64,000 nt of DNA from Saccostrea cucullata (taxonomy: Eukaryota), in the NCBI RefSeq assembly GCF_032062105.1, contig NW_026934231.1:558001-622000 (forward strand), read 5' to 3'. Shown piece after piece: positions 1,455 to 63,378 of the stretch (its first letter is position 1; every line of letters starts with the position of its first letter). Below the pieces are notes generated by a model that saw only the letters and a program-made list of their open reading frames with translations, was not told the DNA's origin and searched no databases. Position numbers and translations under genes: made by a program.

Positions 1455-4400
1455 TCATAAAGCTTTTTTCTTCTTTTCTTCGGCTAACTTCCTTGCTTGT
1501 TGTAGAAGTGAATCAAAGTCCAAAGGATCACTCTTCCTAACAAGGGGGTAGTACTCTTCAATCACCTCATTTTTCCCATCTGTAATTAAAACACATTTTT
1601 TATTCAATGACTTACATCTGAGCAAACGTCTTTTCTTGAGGAATCATTATCGATGTATTTCAATGAAGTTTGATTTTCCTAGATTTTGAGGGTACCTCTT
1701 AATCATGAATTTACAACCTCAAAAAATATTCCTCAGGAGATGATTAGAAAAGAAAATAAAAATTCCCTATATTCACGGTGTTAACAAATCCAATTGTACA
1801 TTCAGTACCTAAATCAGCATATTCCACTTCACAAAATTTTGCCACCAAAACAAAGGTAATCTCCATGTTTTATTTGGAAAATTGAGCAAAAATAACAAAT
1901 TAATTGGTTTCTTTTGCATTAGACCTTTTTTATATAGGTGATTTTCGTGCAGTCCATGGTCATTTCAGTAATTGCAAAGCCATAGTTACTGGCATTCAAT
2001 TAATTTTAAATTATCACGCTTTCTTTAATTCAAATCACATGTAATCAATAATTTTTGTGTTTGTTCACAAAAGCTATTTTAATAGCCAACGCTACAAATG
2101 TTTCATCAATCAAAACAACGTGGGCTCTCTGGGTTTTGAAAATTATTCCCACATATCGTAAATAATGTTACCACGTGTATTTGTATATCCTGCATTATCA
2201 TGCATGTTAGTTCATGTAGTTTTATCGTACATTTTGGTGTGTTAAAAAATCATTCAAATAAATACCAAATTTTACACAAAGCATCTATGGGTGAAGTGTG
2301 GAACAAAAATTGTGAATTTCATGGTCCCTTGGGATTGGGGTGGGGCCAAAACCACTAAAATTAGTGCAATAAAAAGTTTTATTTCCTGGACATCAAGCAG
2401 TCAAACTGTTATTCGCTGCGTTGTACCAAAATTGTGAAGATATCGGGTACACAGGGTGGCACTCATCGATTATATAGCATATTGGAAAGTCATTGAATTA
2501 ACTAAGTATATAGTTTAGAGACTATTAATAGCTGCAATTGTGTTAATTAATTATTATATAAAATTTAACAATTTTTTAAAAACTTACTCTCTGCTTGGGT
2601 ATTAAATAAACTAATAAAGACATAATTACGATGAGAAAGAATTGTAAAATGTCGTTTACATGTAGCTATGGTATGGATTAAATAGAGAAAATGCAAATTT
2701 GTTTGAAGTAACTTTTATTCAAAGAATTAACCAAGTATATAGTTATGATGAGCAAGAATGCCTCTTCCTAAATTGTGAATTTTATGGCCCCAGGGTCAGG
2801 GGTTCTGGTGTTAGGGTGGGGCTCTATTGATTATATAGAGAAAATGCAGAAATTGTTTGAAAATCTTCTTCTCTGCTGCTTGGTATTCAACAAATTAACT
2901 AAGTATATAGTTATGATGAGCAAGAATGCTTCTTCCAAAATTGTGAATGAATTTACAACCTTGATTATATAGTGAAAGTACATTAATTCTTTGAAAATTT
3001 TCTTCTCTACTCCTGAGTATTAAATAAATTAACAAAAGATATAGTTATGATGAGGAAGAATGACTCTTCCAAAATTGTGAATTTTTATGGCCCCAGGGTC
3101 AGGGGTTCTGGTGTTAGGGTTTCACTGATCATATAGTGAAAGTACATTAATTGTTGAAAACTTTCTACTCCTGGGTATTAAATAAATTAACAAAGCATAG
3201 TTATGATGAGGAAGAACTTCACAAAATTGTGAATTTTTATGGCCCCAAAACAAAGGTCAAATGTTAGGGTGCTCTATTGATTATATAGAGAAAATACATT
3301 ATTTCTTTTAAAATCTTCTTCTCTGTTCCTGGGTATTAAATAAACTCAAAAATACATAGTCATGATAGAATGCCTTTTGAATTTTATGGCCCCAGGGTCA
3401 GCCACCTTTTTAGGGCAGGGTTCTATTGGTTATATAGAGAAAATGCAAAAATTGTTTGAAAATCTTTTTCTCTGCTCCTGGGGATTAAGCAGATGAACTA
3501 CCTATATAGCTATGATGAGCAAGGGCCATTCTTCCTGAATTGTGAATTTCCACACCCATTTAAATGTAAATGTTTTTTATATACTGAAAATGAATTAAAT
3601 TGAAACCTTCTACTTTGTATTAATCAAATATTTTTGATAATCAGGGTGCCTTTTCCAAAATTTGAAATGTGTGGACCAAGGGTATGGTAGTGGCACCATA
3701 TTGATTATTCTTATATTTTTTAGTCGAAACAATTTCCACAAAGTGGTTAAGTAACCAAACAAACATGCTAAGTGTATACTTATGATGTCTTTTTCAAAAT
3801 TGTGAATGTCATGGTGTCTAGTTTAAAACATGAACCAATGTCAATCATTGTAAAGTTGTTGCATGATGCTCAGGTGACCTATAAGGCCCATGGGCCTCTT
3901 GTTTCAAAAAGTTGCAGATCCAGAGCTCCATATTTGAGCTTTCTCTAAATCAACACTGATTTGCTAATTTTCCTGAATGTTGATCATGAAAATGCATGAT
4001 ATCAATAAATTGACAAATATTGTGGTTCTCCATCAAATGAACAGTGAGTATCAGCTAGGAACGAAAGACATTTGTAAAGTCTTCATATGAATCTGCTGAA
4101 CTATGATCTCATCACATACATCACTGCTTCATATGGAAACAACTTGAGCAAAATCAGTAAAACCTAAAATTGACTCACCCACACTCCCTGAAATGGACAC
4201 TAACTTCTTCTATTTCTCCAAAACACTCAAATCTTTTCCTCAGCTGTCTTTTAGAGTAGTTGTTTGGAATTTTCCCCACATAAATGATTCTTCTGTCTTT
4301 CTGCATAGAAAACATAATCATTTGAGTGAGTTTTGAGAACTTAACAAACTTCTCATTGTCACTTAATTTCTCAAGCAATATATCATTAAGATTTTCAACA

Positions 4401-7400
4401 AATAAATAAAAGAAATTTATGAGGGTTCAGTCTATGCGAAAGTCACCGGACCGTCGGTTTTTACCGGTAAAATTTAGGTCGGGTAGGTAAAAAATTTCAG
4501 TATACAGGACCAAATGTCCGATAAAAATTAAGGCCAAATAAATCTAAATTAAGAGGTACACATGGTCAAATTCCCCACAAATATCCTTTATTTGACCAAT
4601 TTAGAAGTAATACCTGATTAATTTTTATGTATTACAACCCTGTCATGATTGTTTTTATTCTAATTTGAATTTCCTCTGTCAATGACTAAGATTTATAGCT
4701 CATACAGTCATACGTAGATTCGGTTGGGAAATTATTTTAAATGATCATTGAACTTGAGTAACCATAATGAATATAAATATACACTGAAAGTGCATATTAA
4801 ATTTTATAAAGAAAATCTTTGATACAGTGTATGTTGTATAAGTCAAATATGAAAAAAAATGCATGCAATTGTATTAATAGATACCTTTTACAAAGAAAAA
4901 TTATAAATAGTTAACTTGTCTATTTCACTCTGAATTTATTTATGCTTAAATTTCACAGTGAGAATTAACCCCATCCCACCCACCCTCTCAATCTCAGTAT
5001 CATAATGATGTATGGATTTAAAGGAAAAAAATGTTGGTCTGGTAAGAAATTGTTTGGTCTGGTAAAATTTTTATTTTTACCAGACATTTTGTCCTGTAAA
5101 AATTTTTAACTTTCGCATAGACTGAGGGTTATAGTTAAAAAAACAGCTACTATAAAATTTATTATATTAATATAAAGAAATCTTGAATTCTTTAAGTTCT
5201 TTTTTAAAATAGATTTTCTAATTTTATTATTTTTTCCGTCTCACCATTTTTTGTGCCCTCTCTTCCTCTCTACGTTTCTGGCGTTCTGCCAGACGTCTCT
5301 CATGTGACAAGCTTCGACTTCTACTTCTGTATTCTCTATGTCTACTGTAGCTTCTACTCCGACTTCTAGACCTGTCATATATAATAAAAAAAAATTTAAA
5401 TGTAACAAAAATCAAACAGTCTCACCTTTTTTTCTGATATTTCAAGAAAATTATTCCTATACACTGTATATTTTTTCCTCTTTCAAAGTAATGGTGATTC
5501 TTATGAAATAATGTAACTCTGAAAACTTTAAAATGTCCCAATTTCCATTAATTAACCCTAAAATTAAACTCACCTGCTGGAAACAGATGAAGACCTAGAT
5601 CTTGAGCTGTATGACCTTGATCTTGACCGGGAATATGACCGAGATCTTGAACGAGATGACCTACAATGGGTAAAAATACATATATTATTTATTTTCATTG
5701 AGTTTAGTTCTTTTGTAATCTTAATGAGCAGTGAGTATCAGCTAGGAACGAAAGACATTTGTAAAGTCTTCACATGAATCTGATGAACTATGATCTCATC
5801 ACATACTCCACTGTCAGTATCAGGTTAATTGAAAGTCCAAAAATTAAATTACCCAGTACTCCTTTTTATGTCAAATTAAGTCGGAAATAAAAAAGTTAAT
5901 AAAGGCGTCAACTGTACCTTGAGTATGAAGATCCATATGACCTGGATCGAGATCTGGATACAATGGAATCATAAGTACCACTTCTCCTCCTCCTTCTTCC
6001 TCTCCTGTCACGATCCCTTGACCTTGACCTACTTGAATTTCTACTGGCTGACCTTGAACTTGATCTATGGTTCATAAAGGGAGACCGGCTTCTACTTGAG
6101 TATCCACTGCTTGACTTGCTCTCCAAGGAGACATCGTTGTTGTCATACTTAGTACTATTTGTGAAACAGCTATGATAAGCTGGTAGTCTACTGTAAACTG
6201 AGCTGTCTCCCTGAGGCATGGGATTTGGCTCAAAGAAGTCCTGAATAGTAATGCCCCCTCCATTGCTATCTTCTTTTGGAGCGATATTTTCCTTTTTAGA
6301 TTTGGACTGTTTGACGCCATTCAGTGACAAGGCTGTGTAGTAGGACGGAATTTTATCAAAGAATTTATCATCTTCCTTACCAACTGGACTCTCGTCTCTC
6401 TTTCTATAGTTCCTGCCACTAAACTTCTGTCCTTTCTGTTGTGAATCACTTGGTTTATTTGAGACATTATCCTTAGCAAGGGCAAGATTTTGTCTATTTT
6501 TGAAACCATCTGATGTGGAATTTGTCAAGTTTTTATCTTTTTCGTTCTCCACATCATCAAATTCGTCTATGATCTCTCCATCTTCCAAGTCCAGAACATC
6601 ACCTGGATGACAATTTAAGTTTGACTGCGTTTTGTTTCTCTCTAATCTGGGGACATTCTGACAGTAGTCATGATCCAAGATGTCTCTGTAGTAATTTTTA
6701 TTCACTGAAGTTTTCTCTTCTGCCAGAATGTCAGAGGCAGTACATACTGGCTGTTTCTTTGGGGAATACTTTTCCATGGACTCCAGTATAGATTGACTCA
6801 CTTCTGCGGACGACTTCTGTAGTATTCGTTGCAGTCTGGGAGTGGTACTGGTAGGCTTTAATGCAATAGCCTGGCCACGCCCCCTTTTTGACGGCATCCC
6901 CATTGGCAAAAGAATTACCGACTTCCTTTTATTTAAAGCTTTGATCTTGTGCAGCGCATCTTTGCTATTACATTTCTCTGGGATTATTGACACTGCTAAT
7001 TTTTCAATGGTTTTTGTTTCACTACAAATACAAATTTTTTCCTTTAAATCAAATGCATGAATGTCAATTTAATGAAATCGTTAAACTTGTTTACTCAAGG
7101 CCCATGGGCCACAATGCTCACCTTTTGCCTGCTGTTTTGGGGTGAAATTTTAAACTTAGCTATAACTGGCTTTATAATTATTGACCTTGAATGCAGTATT
7201 TGAATGCTTCAATATTGCTAGGACTATGTTAAAATTAATAATTCTTAAAAGAATTTTAACTTACTTGCTCATTTTGAGATCTTCAAATCCAGATAAAGAA
7301 TTTGATGCTGAAATGAGGATAAAACATACATAAAAGTTGAACAAACTGGAGAAGATGTGAATAATGGGAAAATAGATTTATAAAATGGTATGGTTAAAAC

Positions 7401-53316: not shown

Positions 53317-56300
53317 TCACATGGGTCTCCCTCGACCACGCCCCATGCCTGGGGGGCCACCACCGGGGGCATCCCCTCCTGATTTAGGATTTTTAATTGT
53401 TTCGTCAACAGAGAGGATGAGGCAAGTGGCTTCAGATGCAGCAGTGATAGCATTAATTTTGACAATGGCAGGCTCCCAAACACAGTTCTCAAAATTATCA
53501 GAAATATCCTCCTTCATTATATTTACACCATACCATAAACCACCTGTAACAAGAAAATAAAATGCATCTGAAAATATTTTGTACATCTGTATTTGTATAT
53601 GCATATTTTCTTGTGCACAGGAATAATTTTTTTTTGTTCTGGAAAAGTTATCAGATAAATTTCCAAACTACATGTATCTATGATAACAATTTTCTATTCG
53701 AATTCTGAAAACCTAGTGCCTATACACATAAATTAAGGACAAACAAAATCTGCCTCAATTACCTTCTGCATGGCTCTGTCTAAGTTTGTTGAGAATGTTC
53801 GTAGCATCAAAACCTGCATTATCACACAGTTGTCTTGGAATGATTTCTAGAGCTTTGGCCATTGCACTGATCATAAGTTGCTCCTTTCCTGCTATTGACC
53901 TGGAGTAGTCTCTCAGGTATTTACTCAGTTCCATTTCAATGGCTCCTCCACCTTTAAAACATCACAGCATTTATTTAGTATTATCAATTAAGAATACTGT
54001 GAAAGCAGAAATATTCGTGGGGGATTAAATTTCGTTTATTTCGTTGTTAACAATTATCAACGAAATTAAATCCCACACGAAATTTTATATGGCTATATAT
54101 TAAATAGAGTTACTCTCAAAACAACGAAAATAAATGCCCACGAAACTATTTTGATGACAAATCAACGAAATTTTATCCCCACGAAAATTTGTGCTTTTAC
54201 AGTATTACATGTTTTCTTCTCACTCACGGTAATGTAAAATTTCAACTTGGATTGCTTCATAGAGAACTGAGGGCAGCGTACGATTAAAGAATGGAAGATG
54301 ACCCTTCAATAAAATAAGCAATGTATGATAGGACTTTAGCAACCTACACACCATGCTGGAATATCTTTCTCACCTGCTACAACAGCATCGTTCTTCATGG
54401 CTCTTCTGACAATCATAATTGCATCATGAAGTGACCTCTCGGTTTCCTCAATGAACTGCTCTGCTCCTCCTCTTAATACGAGTGTGCATGTTTTTGCTTC
54501 TGGACAGCCAGTAAATAGATTGTACCTAAACAAAGCCAATGTCACAGTGTAAATACCGAATAAAATATATTAACCTATTTTTCTCTTTCATAACAATCTG
54601 TCAAGTACACCTTTATTTCCAAATCCAACTTAAACTTATTTATGCATGCAATTAAATGTACAGGTTTTAATTCTTGTTTCCTGTTTAAGTTCCAACCTTT
54701 CTCCTCCTATCTGAATTTCCTCGAATTTCTCGCAGGATCCGAGAACACTACCCTGTAGATTCTGACATGTGGTCTGTATAGATCCCCCGCATGCTTTCAT
54801 TGTTCTTTTTAGATCTTCCTCCGGGACTCGGCCAGCACAGAACATGTCCCTGAAATTTAATGAAAATACAAAATTACGATTCTTTTTCAAAGTTTTAGTT
54901 TACATTAAAGATATTTTTTTAACCGCAACAATCTGACAACTGCCTTCCACAAATCGGATGCATAAAGAATATTAGAATGAGACAGGTGCTCAGCAAAGCC
55001 ATCTGGCATTGACTTCAAATTTCTTTCTCAGAAGACCATCGTGAGTAAACATCATGGCACCTGTCTTTTTTTATCATTATCATCCATTTCAATTAAGGCA
55101 ATGTTTGCTTTCGAACCTTCCTTCTTTTTCAAATTGATATTTTTTATTCTCACAGGTCTAACTTTCTACGATATGCATAAACTTAACTGTTATCCCTTTG
55201 AAACTCCTTAAGAAAAAAATTTCTTCAAAACTCTTAAACCAACCACTAAATTTAAGCCTCTATTTATATTTGGTTTGTTGCTTCAATTTGGAATATTCTA
55301 ATTAACTTTTGTCCAAGTTTAGTAAGCTTCAAGTCAGATGTGAGGAGGGTAAGGTGCAATGTTAGTTAAAATTGTGTATAGTAAAGAAAAAAGAACATTG
55401 AACTACTTCCGAATTATTACAGTTGCACAGGCTTTTCAGCTTTCCCTATGGTCAACATTAAAGTTAATTTTTATATGACCCAATTACAATTTATATCTTT
55501 ACATGATTATATTTTTATCCCAATTATCTTATTTCTCTAGCTATCAAAATGTTCAAGAAAATGTTCAAGAAATGTGCATTTTCTTTCGATACCTGAAATT
55601 TAATGATGCTTATATTAAGCAGTCTTTAATCTCTACTCCTACTTTTCTACAAGCAAAGTGGATATTTGACAGATGTGCTCAGCAGAGCCTATTGGCATTG
55701 TCTTCAGATAGAAACTTCAGAAGACCATCGTGAGTAAACATCATAGCACTTGTCATGTTATCTATAACTTTTTAAAATCCTTTTTATCAATCTATAAAAA
55801 TCATCATCAATTTTTATCTATTAAAATTTAATATTACCCATTACCTGTCAGCAAAATACTGAGTAGCTACATCCCCAATGGGGAGTTTGGACAGCACAAC
55901 CTTGGCCCCACTCTTGTGAATCCAGTCTAATTTTTCGTACAGGATTTTCCATTCTGCATCAACAATGGACTGATACTCCTAAAATAACACAAGCAAACAG
56001 GGTTCGACACTAACTTTTTTACCGTGGTGGACCGCAGGTCCACTTGTCAAAAATTATTGGTGGACCTTCTCAATATCTGGTGGACCTTTAAAAATGTTTG
56101 AATGAATGAATCATTACACAAGGCGTTACTTAAAACTAACTTTAATATATACCGAGTCCAGTCAGACTAATAAAGCATAAAAATCTAACCAGTCATCAGA
56201 ATCAAATCAATCAGGGAAAAGGGACACTAGTCAGATTTTTTCAGATGTAAAACTTAAAAAAAAAAAACAAACAACATATTAATCTACAAACCAAAAAATA

Positions 56301-62300: not shown

Positions 62301-63378
62301 CAAAAGCATTTACTTTTTATAGAAGAGATAATCATATCCTTGGTAACGCGATGTAGAACTGAAATGTTTATCCTCAGTGTCCAATAAATTTTTAATTTTC
62401 AAACTGCTATACGTGGATTCCTAGTTATCCAACGATAAGCAATCTCAATTTGAAAAGAAATCACTTGATAAAATATACCATGATGTTAAATATCATAAAG
62501 AAAAGTTTCGTTGTTGGGAATATTACATATTTCGAACATTCCAGAGTAACATGTGATTACTTGCAATTTCCAAACCACAGGGGCATCTTATCCACTCTGT
62601 TCTCTACTTCACATATAAAAATACACAAGGGAAGAATCGAAAGTAGCACACGATTTTTAAAAAAAGTCAAAAAACAACTTACTTGAGAAAAGTTACACAA
62701 ATCCTGAAAGGAACTAGCGCAAATAATGTCCTAGTACTTATCCAGGCTAAAATATTCCAGATATATCCATCGTAAATAGCTTTTATCCAACTAAAACCCC
62801 AGCTTTCTGCACAGTGTGAATCTCTACGCCCAAGAAAAGATAACTCACCCGGATGACAATAGGGTAGTACCCGAGGCCTTCCGAGTGCCATTGGAAGACT
62901 TCGGGCACTACCCTATTGTCATCCGGGTGAGTTATCTTTTCTTGGGCGTAGAGATTCACACTGTGCAGAAAGCTGGGGTTTTAGTTGGATAAAAGCTATT
63001 TACGATGGATATATCTGGAATATTTTAGCCTGGATAAGTACTAGGACATTATTTGCGCTAGTTCCTTTCAGGATTTGTGTAACTTTTCTCAAGTAAGTTG
63101 TTTTTTGACTTTTTTTAAAAATCGTGTGCTACTTTCGATTCTTCCCTTGTGTATTTTTATATGTGAAGTAGAGAACAGAGTGGATAAGATGCCCCTGTGT
63201 CCAAACAAAACAGCACAAAAAATACAAGCTTAAGCAAACTCAAGTTTCTTGTACTTCATAAAATTCAAATCTATACTTAATCTTTTCTTCATTTCCTTTT
63301 CATAATTCACAACAAACAATTCTAAATAGAACGATTGGGATGGATTTTAAACATAGGCATGATTGCACCTACCATCAT
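53317..63378 (-). CDS. CCT7: T-complex protein 1 subunit eta, 12 exons
   Basis: Exons 63378-63373 (MM), 61879-61726 ([15 protein letters not shown]...[10 protein letters not shown]), 61591-61485 (SNDGATIL), 61384-61259 (VGDGTTSV), 60670-60618, 60505-60334, 59872-59708 ([16 protein letters not shown]), 55978-55845, 54849-54697, 54525-54374, 53951-53763, 53543-53317 (GRGRGRPM stop). Confidence 0.97.
53995..54204. mobile_element. About 210-bp TACTGT...ACAGTA MITE
   Basis: tactgtgaaagcagaaatattcgtgggg / ccccacgaaaatttgtgcttttacagta. Confidence 0.7.
54981..55065 (-). ncRNA. SNORD35: Box C/D snoRNA, SNORD35 (U35/snR73)-like, copy 1
   Basis: Stem gacaggtgc/gcacctgtc; box C ATGATGT; guide CTCACGATGGTCT complementary to 28S AGACCGTCGTGAG; D' CTGA; CAATGCCA hairpin; box D CTGA. 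Matches recalled U35. Confidence 0.85.
55668..55754 (-). ncRNA. SNORD35: Box C/D snoRNA, SNORD35-like, copy 2
   Basis: ATGATGtttactcacgatggtcttCTGA...gacaatgccaataggctctgCTGA with terminal stem; identical guide. Confidence 0.85.
56312..58793. mobile_element. HINE/Helentron-like element
   Basis: Begins aactag...agggccccgc; ends with (gaca/gacg)n and stem-loop agggcacccgcaaattcttgcggggccct. Confidence 0.65.
57259..58461. mobile_element. TIR element with 5-bp TSD nested in the HINE
   Basis: TIR tagtgttaaatcta / tagatttaacacta; TSD ctact; empty site tctgcctactgaactacc visible in the duplicate unit at about 58614. Confidence 0.85.
60009..60202 (-). ncRNA. SNORA74: Box H/ACA snoRNA, SNORA74 (U19/snR191)-like, three hairpins
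   Basis: Hairpin 1 ccactgat..GTCAACT...GGTGTTACAtcagtgg, H box ATATAA, middle hairpin, TGAGAGTTGG...GACCATAG, terminal ACA plus 3 nt; about 194 nt, like recalled U19. Confidence 0.7.
61017..61211 (-). ncRNA. Unassigned box H/ACA RNA candidate
   Basis: Long 5' hairpin tcctcttctatatca...tgatgtagagagga, H box AGAGAA, second hairpin ggaag...gaga...tctc...cttcc, ACA plus ctt; sense to the host gene. Confidence 0.6.
61963..62070 (-). mobile_element. Degenerate tRNA-like repeat related in layout to 41032-41145
   Basis: Minus strand tagctcagttggtagagc...gggtttaattcctggtcaagcc...tttctcctttcctgttgcaca. Confidence 0.45.
62576..63199. mobile_element. Very young foldback element, 7-bp TSD (P-superfamily-like)
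   Basis: About 293-bp arms with no mismatch seen by eye, starting cacaggggcatc; about 10-nt loop; TSD tccaaac at 62569-62575 and 63200-63206. Confidence 0.88.

Follow-up and report, generated by a model that had tools for sequence, protein, structure and literature searches.

In vertebrates and yeast, snoRNAs (small nucleolar RNAs) of the box C/D class are as a rule processed singly from an intron, at a set distance from its branch point, and the recursive splice sites described in animals belong to very long introns. How animals handle a snoRNA that has been duplicated within its own intron is, to our knowledge, poorly documented outside mammals. SNORD35 (RF00211) is a box C/D guide RNA for 2'-O-methylation of large-subunit ribosomal RNA, and its human copies sit inside introns of ribosomal-protein genes. 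Several published systems come close to a shared intron: snoRNA clusters within introns exist, and two snoRNAs per intron give rise in mammals to long non-coding RNAs with snoRNA ends, or sno-lncRNAs (PMC11028025, PMC4233238); multi-snoRNA host genes combine alternative splicing with nonsense-mediated decay (NMD) of the transcript (PMC4233243); and the non-coding host transcripts of Candida and Debaryomyces carry RNA-seq-supported zero-length and one-base exons between their snoRNA introns (PMC5033589). The optimal place for C/D ribonucleoproteins (snoRNPs) to assemble is some 50 nt upstream of the branch point (PMC8162545). Here we describe an intron of the chaperonin gene CCT7 in the mollusc Saccostrea cucullata (contig NW_026934231.1), which holds two SNORD35 copies and, between them, a second copy of its own acceptor followed directly by GT. 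All coordinates are positions within the 64,000-nt stretch that was analysed, referred to as the window, and all CCT7 features lie on its minus strand.

Two SNORD35 copies in one CCT7 intron

The host intron (55844..54850), read directly from the sequence, is 995 nt long and in phase 2, and interrupts the AG|G codon of Arg306 (Table 1). Translations of the exons on its two sides match T-complex protein 1 subunit eta over residues 262-305 (E 6e-19) and 307-356 (E 3e-19), and the top PDB matches of both are all eta chains, so that the exons form contiguous eta-subunit sequence and the host is CCT7. Since they correspond to human CCT7 residues 262-305 and 307-356, a coding exon hidden in the 995-nt intron is excluded.

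Table 1 Features of the CCT7 intron and its flanking exons in the window, in order of transcription
Feature	Position	Strand	Remarks
Upstream CCT7 exon	55845..55978	-	Residues 262-305 and first two bases of Arg codon 306; ends ...TATTTTGCTGACAG
True 5' splice site, CAG|GTAATG	55839..55844	-	First G at 55844; U1 duplex -8.1 kcal/mol
SNORD35 copy 1 (upstream)	mature ~55675..55749	-	Rfam RF00211 match 55670-55749; 55.1 bits, E 3.6e-10
Branch-point-like motif CTTAAT	55614..55619	-	22 nt before internal AG; within the 38 nt alignable to the region of the true acceptor
R1, internal acceptor copy, TCATTAAATTTCAG|G	55592..55606	-	Identical over 15 nt, in direct orientation, to 54849-54863
AG|GT, AG followed directly by GT; candidate junction of a zero-length exon	55591..55594	-	AG 55594-55593, GT 55592-55591; donor GTATCG
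Hypothetical 90-nt poison exon	55503..55592	-	Sequence-level candidate; R1 acceptor to CAT|GTAAAG; in-frame TGA 55567-55565
Spacer, R1 to copy 2	55061..55591	-	Single copy in genome; self-match only
SNORD35 copy 2 (downstream)	mature ~54986..55060	-	Rfam RF00211 match 54981-55060; 51.5 bits, E 4.3e-09
R2, true acceptor, TCATTAAATTTCAG and first exon base G	54849..54863	-	AG at 54851-54850
Downstream CCT7 exon	54697..54849	-	Residues 307-356

A preliminary description of this DNA had placed two intact SNORD35 genes in the intron, and this was borne out at all coordinates by the Rfam covariance model and the minus-strand reading: both copies cover model positions 1-88 of 88 and score well above the RF00211 gathering score of 36. 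Each carries a C box (AUGAUGU), a D' element (UUUACUCACGAUGGUCUU-CUGA), a D box (CUGA) and a GUGC/GCAC terminal stem. The copies are 81% identical over 75 nt, a figure that conceals a sharp internal division, with the segment from the C box through the D' guide identical and the internal loops, AGUUUCUAUC and GAAAGAAAUU, by which the copies can be told apart, unrelated. An identical guide segment and kept boxes and stem alongside unrelated loops are the pattern expected if both are functional genes under purifying selection. When the entire 1.17-Gb assembly was searched, with counts that are lower bounds, at least two SNORD35 matches were obtained, and these two copies were the only ones returned. 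Sequence comparison, including that with relatives given below, points to a conserved two-snoRNA intron, with old SNORD35 paralogues that are both presumably kept intact by selection; both are probably expressed from host transcripts.

An internal copy of the acceptor block

The preliminary description had also reported an AG|GTATCG between the snoRNAs, sharing sequence with the true acceptor. The likeness proved to be an exact repeat, the 15-mer TCATTAAATTTCAGG occurring at 55606-55592 (hereafter R1) and again at the true acceptor, 54863-54849 (R2). Only 3 of 5000 dinucleotide-preserving shuffles gave a shared word of at least 15 nt between the acceptor region and the intron body. Local alignment of R1 and R2 extends to about 38 nt, with an equal score in 4 of 300 shuffles, and takes in the CTTAAT that had been proposed as a branch point, which is present as a motif. 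All remaining comparisons of flanks stayed at noise level, in agreement with the earlier statement that sequence around the duplicates has diverged. The block around the internal AG is a real copy of the true acceptor and no product of chance.

The spacing of this block is compatible with snoRNP assembly. The internal AG lies 82 nt past the 3' end of the upstream snoRNA (about 75 nt had been claimed; the distance is canonical, the figure was slightly low), and the downstream snoRNA lies 136 nt before the true AG. The geometry of R1 fits the C/D assembly distance, and would also be explained by inheritance if a snoRNA and its acceptor had once been copied together.

As a splice site, R1 is uneven. 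Its pyrimidine tract is the weakest among the gene's ten acceptors (10 of 20 positions, longest run 3, against 14 of 20 at the true acceptor). For the donor side, the 5' end of U1 was taken from the same genome and duplex energies were computed against it. The junction donor CAG|GTATCG reached -7.2 kcal/mol, within the range of eight real CCT7 donors (-5.4 to -11.9), and it would be left unchanged by the first splicing step, R1 and the upstream exon both ending in CAG. Judged by these energies it is an adequate donor, and R1 with its GT forms a plausible splice-site pair. The dinucleotides themselves come cheaply: AGGT is not enriched in the intron (three sites against 3.8 expected), four of the nine real exon starts listed begin with GT, and a TA following the copied CAGG is, as estimated from base composition, roughly a 1-in-8 accident.

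The age of the repeat can be approached through the true acceptor, which reads ttttcattaaatttcag|G in the window and ttttcattatag|A, ctcgtttcag|A or tgttattcag|A in relatives. Because it differs among relatives, generic splice-site constraint evidently acts without preserving the exact sequence, and identity at 15 of 15 positions points to recent common ancestry. An old neutral remnant of the duplication should have decayed like its flanks; the identity would accordingly mark either a secondary local copy or gene conversion of a remnant with the true acceptor, and it suggests recent copying or conversion of the 15-mers.

Three further approaches to R1 gave negative results. A retroposed snoRNA framed by a 15-nt target-site duplication was rejected, with an A-tail absent beside both repeats and a donor copy not found elsewhere. 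A decayed copy of the exon start following R1 was not significant (99 to 270 of 2000 shuffles equal). A spurious open reading frame spanning R1, used as a query for close relatives, gave no match. Beyond the junction, at 55546-55572 (20-46 nt past it), the spacer contains a perfect 12-nt tandem repeat, CTTGAACATTTT x 2.2, whose weak resemblance to the downstream exon start was not significant.

The intron in relatives and other snoRNA loci

Relatives were approached by exon-by-exon searches and then through orthologous genomic contigs. Among the sampled lineages, SNORD35 in this CCT7 intron is confined to one clade with the exon signature TCQNL.... Species B, the only other species with a complete intron, is represented by four individuals (L008-L011, 99.2-99.9% identical) and has two SNORD35 copies. 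SNORD35 is likewise found in the intron of species F (L022-25), where the contig ends at the snoRNA, and of species C (L003-7), where it ends inside it; species E (L012) has the clade's exon signature and no snoRNA in the last 660 nt of the intron, the part covered. At least five other lineages have the CCT7 intron without SNORD35 (L017, L020, L021, L026, the last read by eye, and L060); L013-16 were left out of this tally because too little of the intron was covered. The independent Logan contigs of species C and F (L003-L007 and L022-L025) all begin within the snoRNA or at its 5' edge, the effect that a repeated 30-mer would have on de Bruijn assembly, which hints at a second copy in both species.

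The layout is shared by the window and species B: 95 and 83 nt, respectively, from the donor to the first snoRNA, 612 and 625-669 nt between the snoRNAs, and 135 and 175 nt from the second snoRNA to the acceptor. Identity of the SNORD35 copies between the two species (75-84%) is about as low as that between paralogues within a species (81-84%), the exons of the two share only 78-84% of their DNA sequence, and the SNORD35 pair is therefore at least as old as the split of the window lineage from species B. A crosswise orthology, hinted at by BLAST, in which the upstream window copy would correspond to the downstream copy of species B, was rejected: no more than one or two positions favour it, the pairwise identities form a star-like pattern, and the common layout speaks for orthology by position.

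The AG|GT, whose lack of conservation where both copies exist had been named in the preliminary description as refuting its proposal, is absent from species B in all four individuals. No AGGT occurs anywhere between the two copies of this species, nor is its own acceptor repeated: the longest word in common is 8 nt, the mode of the shuffles. A polymorphic 44-nt indel sits about 85 nt past the upstream copy, where an internal acceptor would be expected, and a possible relic of R1 (CAATTTCAACTATTG) was rejected as noise (207 of 300 shuffles). In species C, the flank after the snoRNA weakly resembles that of R1 (GCATCA-TTAAAT; 26 of 1000 shuffles) and runs on to ATTAG|TCGG, without GT. The snoRNA scores of species B are 39.1 bits for the upstream copy (36.7 in one individual) and 52.9 for the downstream one; in the window the upstream copy scores highest.

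One lineage without SNORD35 shows a different arrangement. The orthologous intron of L017 (6215-6379 of ENA contig k141_99682) contains no snoRNA and carries 4.4 tandem 37-nt units that resemble the acceptor together with the opening bases of the following exon (...GCAG|GACATGTTTTGTGCT...), forming a decoy-acceptor array directly upstream of the true one. Acceptor duplication in this intron thus occurs unlinked to snoRNAs.

Scans of metagenomes with the SNORD35 guide gave no match for the 28-mer; the 18-mer hit 26 loci, most of them chance matches in bacteria, with a small number of C/D RNAs of other kinds, and this CCT7 intron was not among them. On a metagenome contig of a eukaryote (L037, JACCDP011188734.1, minus strand), two tandem C/D-like RNAs lie 670 nt apart at 2494-2511 and 3164-3181; the 18-nt guide core of SNORD35 is common to both, the rest of their sequence differs, and a third copy is found in L048 of the same assembly.

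Two further snoRNA groups were considered as analogues of a shared intron. In the window, C/D snoRNAs of the snR60/Z15 family at 5730-5811 and 4043-4124 (minus strand; 53.8 and 47.5 bits) occupy two separate introns of an Arg/Ser-rich gene and are parted by real exons. The first ends about 70 nt before its acceptor; this is the canonical one-per-intron layout, in contrast with the CCT7 intron. Elsewhere in the genome, three U14 (SNORD14) copies within 3.3 kb (L059; G000:C8047:546034-549285) are set apart by short segments that resemble exons, have good splice signals and show no obvious capacity to code for protein, in what looks like a non-coding snoRNA host gene. Both groups were rejected as analogues, each snoRNA having an intron of its own.

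AG|GT is also found exactly at the 5' end of SNORD35 copy 2 (window 55062-55060, gacag|GTGCCATGATG) and likewise at the 5' ends of two of the U14 copies (L059 632-634 and 1461-1463, cag|GTAGTGATGATG), where it may be a by-product of a terminal stem that opens with GT after CAG. Directly upstream of the CCT7 gene, the window contains a 307-nt inverted repeat (62576-62882 and 62893-63199, 99% complementary, with a 10-nt loop), which may be either a foldback element or a palindrome created in assembly.

Competing readings and known systems

The reading we favour, with confidence only a little above even, takes the internal TCATTAAATTTCAG|GT for an acceptor-block copy limited to the window lineage, a leftover that is not needed for snoRNA release. 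R1 would have originated by secondary local copying, or as a remnant of the old duplication that was recently homogenised with the true acceptor by gene conversion. In most transcripts the 995 nt would leave as one lariat on which both snoRNPs would assemble; the snoRNAs would then be parted through debranching, trimming by exonucleases and cleavage within the spacer, or would remain joined as a snoRNA-ended RNA, with the internal site acting as a minor cryptic 3' splice site at most. We prefer this account because species B keeps the layout without the site, the tract of R1 is weak and a GT is cheap by chance.

Several observations sit uneasily with a leftover. A neutral island of 15 identical positions amid flanks that cannot be aligned is difficult to account for unless selection or a recent event is invoked. 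The block has the full anatomy of a 3'/5' junction, with a motif at -22, a position 82 nt past a snoRNA and a donor whose U1 pairing (-7.2 kcal/mol) is better than that of five of the eight real donors of the gene. An intact decoy acceptor that is transcribed first, in an essential gene, should be counterselected unless it is harmless or rescued by re-splicing. Finally, the upstream SNORD35 is the lower-scoring copy in species B, which is without R1, and the highest-scoring one in the window.

That the internal site is actually used, whether by recursion or through a poison exon, is a possibility we regard as doubtful when the two routes are taken together. The better of these routes, although in itself unlikely, is removal of the intron in two steps across a zero-length exon: the 5' splice site would first join the internal acceptor, releasing a 252-nt lariat with copy 1 at the optimal distance, and the CAG|GTATCG regenerated at the junction would then join the true acceptor, releasing copy 2 in a 743-nt lariat and leaving the messenger RNA (mRNA) unchanged. 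R1 is an exact copy of a working acceptor, with a CTTAAT and a snoRNA at suitable distances, and the energy of the regenerated donor falls inside the range of real ones. Donors for a longer exon are poor (-1.7 and -1.4 kcal/mol), so that re-splicing at the junction would be the likelier outcome if R1 were used at all. The exons of zero length or one base between snoRNA introns of Candida and Debaryomyces offer a precedent (PMC5033589), and there is an argument from survivorship, in that a duplicated acceptor in an essential gene would persist only if disabled or rescued by the junction donor. Set against this are species B, which retains both snoRNAs with no AGGT between them, the ATTAG|TCGG of species C at a spot that is possibly homologous (a weak match), the poor pyrimidine tract, and an intron of only 995 nt where animal recursive sites are described in very long ones. 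The recursive site proposed in the preliminary description is thus supported in part, as far as a genuine acceptor copy, its canonical distance from an intact snoRNA and a regenerated donor that pairs with U1 are concerned, and fails on conservation of the AG|GT in species B, the one other species with a complete intron. Just as unlikely is the selective version of this proposal, in which selection would have maintained the duplicate acceptor and its junction donor, and gene conversion would have kept both acceptors the same, for two-step removal with one lariat per snoRNA, each at the optimal distance from a 3' splice site.

The pair could instead yield, as its main extra product, a sno-lncRNA of about 764 nt (55749-54986) capped by a snoRNP at each end, an outcome that would be compatible with a leftover acceptor and that we consider rather improbable in this leading role. 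Two C/D snoRNAs per intron are the defining arrangement of such RNAs (PMC11028025, PMC4233238), which also qualifies the one-snoRNA-per-intron premise of the preliminary description: it holds as a vertebrate and yeast rule, and intronic clusters and snoRNA-ended lncRNAs are known exceptions. Two deeply diverged species have retained the layout and a spacer length of about 610-670 nt, but not the spacer sequence, with alignments at noise level. Neither was structure found in the spacer of the window or of species B, with fold z-scores of -0.13 (on 55061-55674, which includes the 82-nt flank after copy 1) and +0.18, and no further Rfam family was found in the spacer of either species, in the window at E values up to 1. 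With fold z-scores near zero and no additional Rfam match, an RNase III-type hairpin or an extra RNA gene was rejected; a transposon origin of the 532-nt spacer was rejected on its single occurrence in the genome.

Use of R1 as the acceptor of an internal poison exon, for example 55592-55503, is more improbable still. Each snoRNA would then lie in an intron of its own and the mRNA would be lost to NMD; the frame entering from the upstream exon reads RYRKKMHIS and then a stop, the TGA lying nine codons past R1, and human multi-snoRNA host genes couple alternative splicing with NMD for co-hosted snoRNAs (PMC4233243, PMC4233238). The candidate donors at 55502 (-1.7 kcal/mol) and 55487 (-1.4 kcal/mol) fall far short of the -5.4 to -11.9 of real donors, no conserved signals of an internal exon were seen in species B, and transcripts of an essential chaperonin gene would be wasted. 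An assembly artefact, in which an intron with one snoRNA would have been assembled twice in succession from its two haplotypes, is very improbable even though haplotype duplications are frequent in mollusc assemblies, given that the repeated exon sequence amounts to 1 nt, that copies only 81% identical with unrelated loops are far beyond allelic divergence, and that the two-copy layout was assembled independently in four species B runs.

Whichever reading holds, the locus is a natural case of the problem: the only two SNORD35 genes detected share one intron of an essential gene, in a layout found in two distant relatives, one lineage having an intact internal acceptor-donor junction and the other being without it. 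If the junction goes unused, the locus shows that one intron can maintain a pair of C/D snoRNAs with no help from such a site, and it becomes a candidate source of a mollusc sno-lncRNA.

Compared with known SNORD35 genes, both window copies have the full-length match, boxes, guide and terminal stem, and differ in their host, CCT7, and in being two paralogues in one intron. Known sno-lncRNAs (PMC11028025; PMC4234469) likewise come from introns that hold a pair of C/D snoRNAs several hundred nucleotides apart; in the window the joined RNA would be a candidate product, and the spacer is not conserved in sequence. As in NMD-coupled hosts of several snoRNAs (PMC4233243), an internal acceptor with an in-frame stop could separate the snoRNAs, but the candidate donors in the window are very weak. 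With the ratchet points of animal introns the locus shares a 3' splice site followed directly by a regenerated 5' splice site, with CAG|GTA present and adequate U1 pairing; it differs in an intron of 995 nt rather than tens of kilobases, a weak tract, a GTATCG unlike GTAAGT and absence of the site from species B. The common logic is clearest with the snoRNA polycistrons of Candida and Debaryomyces, where AG|GT also stands between snoRNA-bearing intron segments and each snoRNA receives its own lariat, although the fungal hosts are non-coding and supported by RNA-seq, while the host here is an essential animal coding gene read from genomic sequence, with a relative that is without the site. The mechanism proposed for the junction is in this sense already known in kind, and its novelty would lie in the protein-coding animal host and in the shortness of the intron. 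Use of the junction would extend the recursive-splicing solution of yeast snoRNA polycistrons to a coding gene of an animal.

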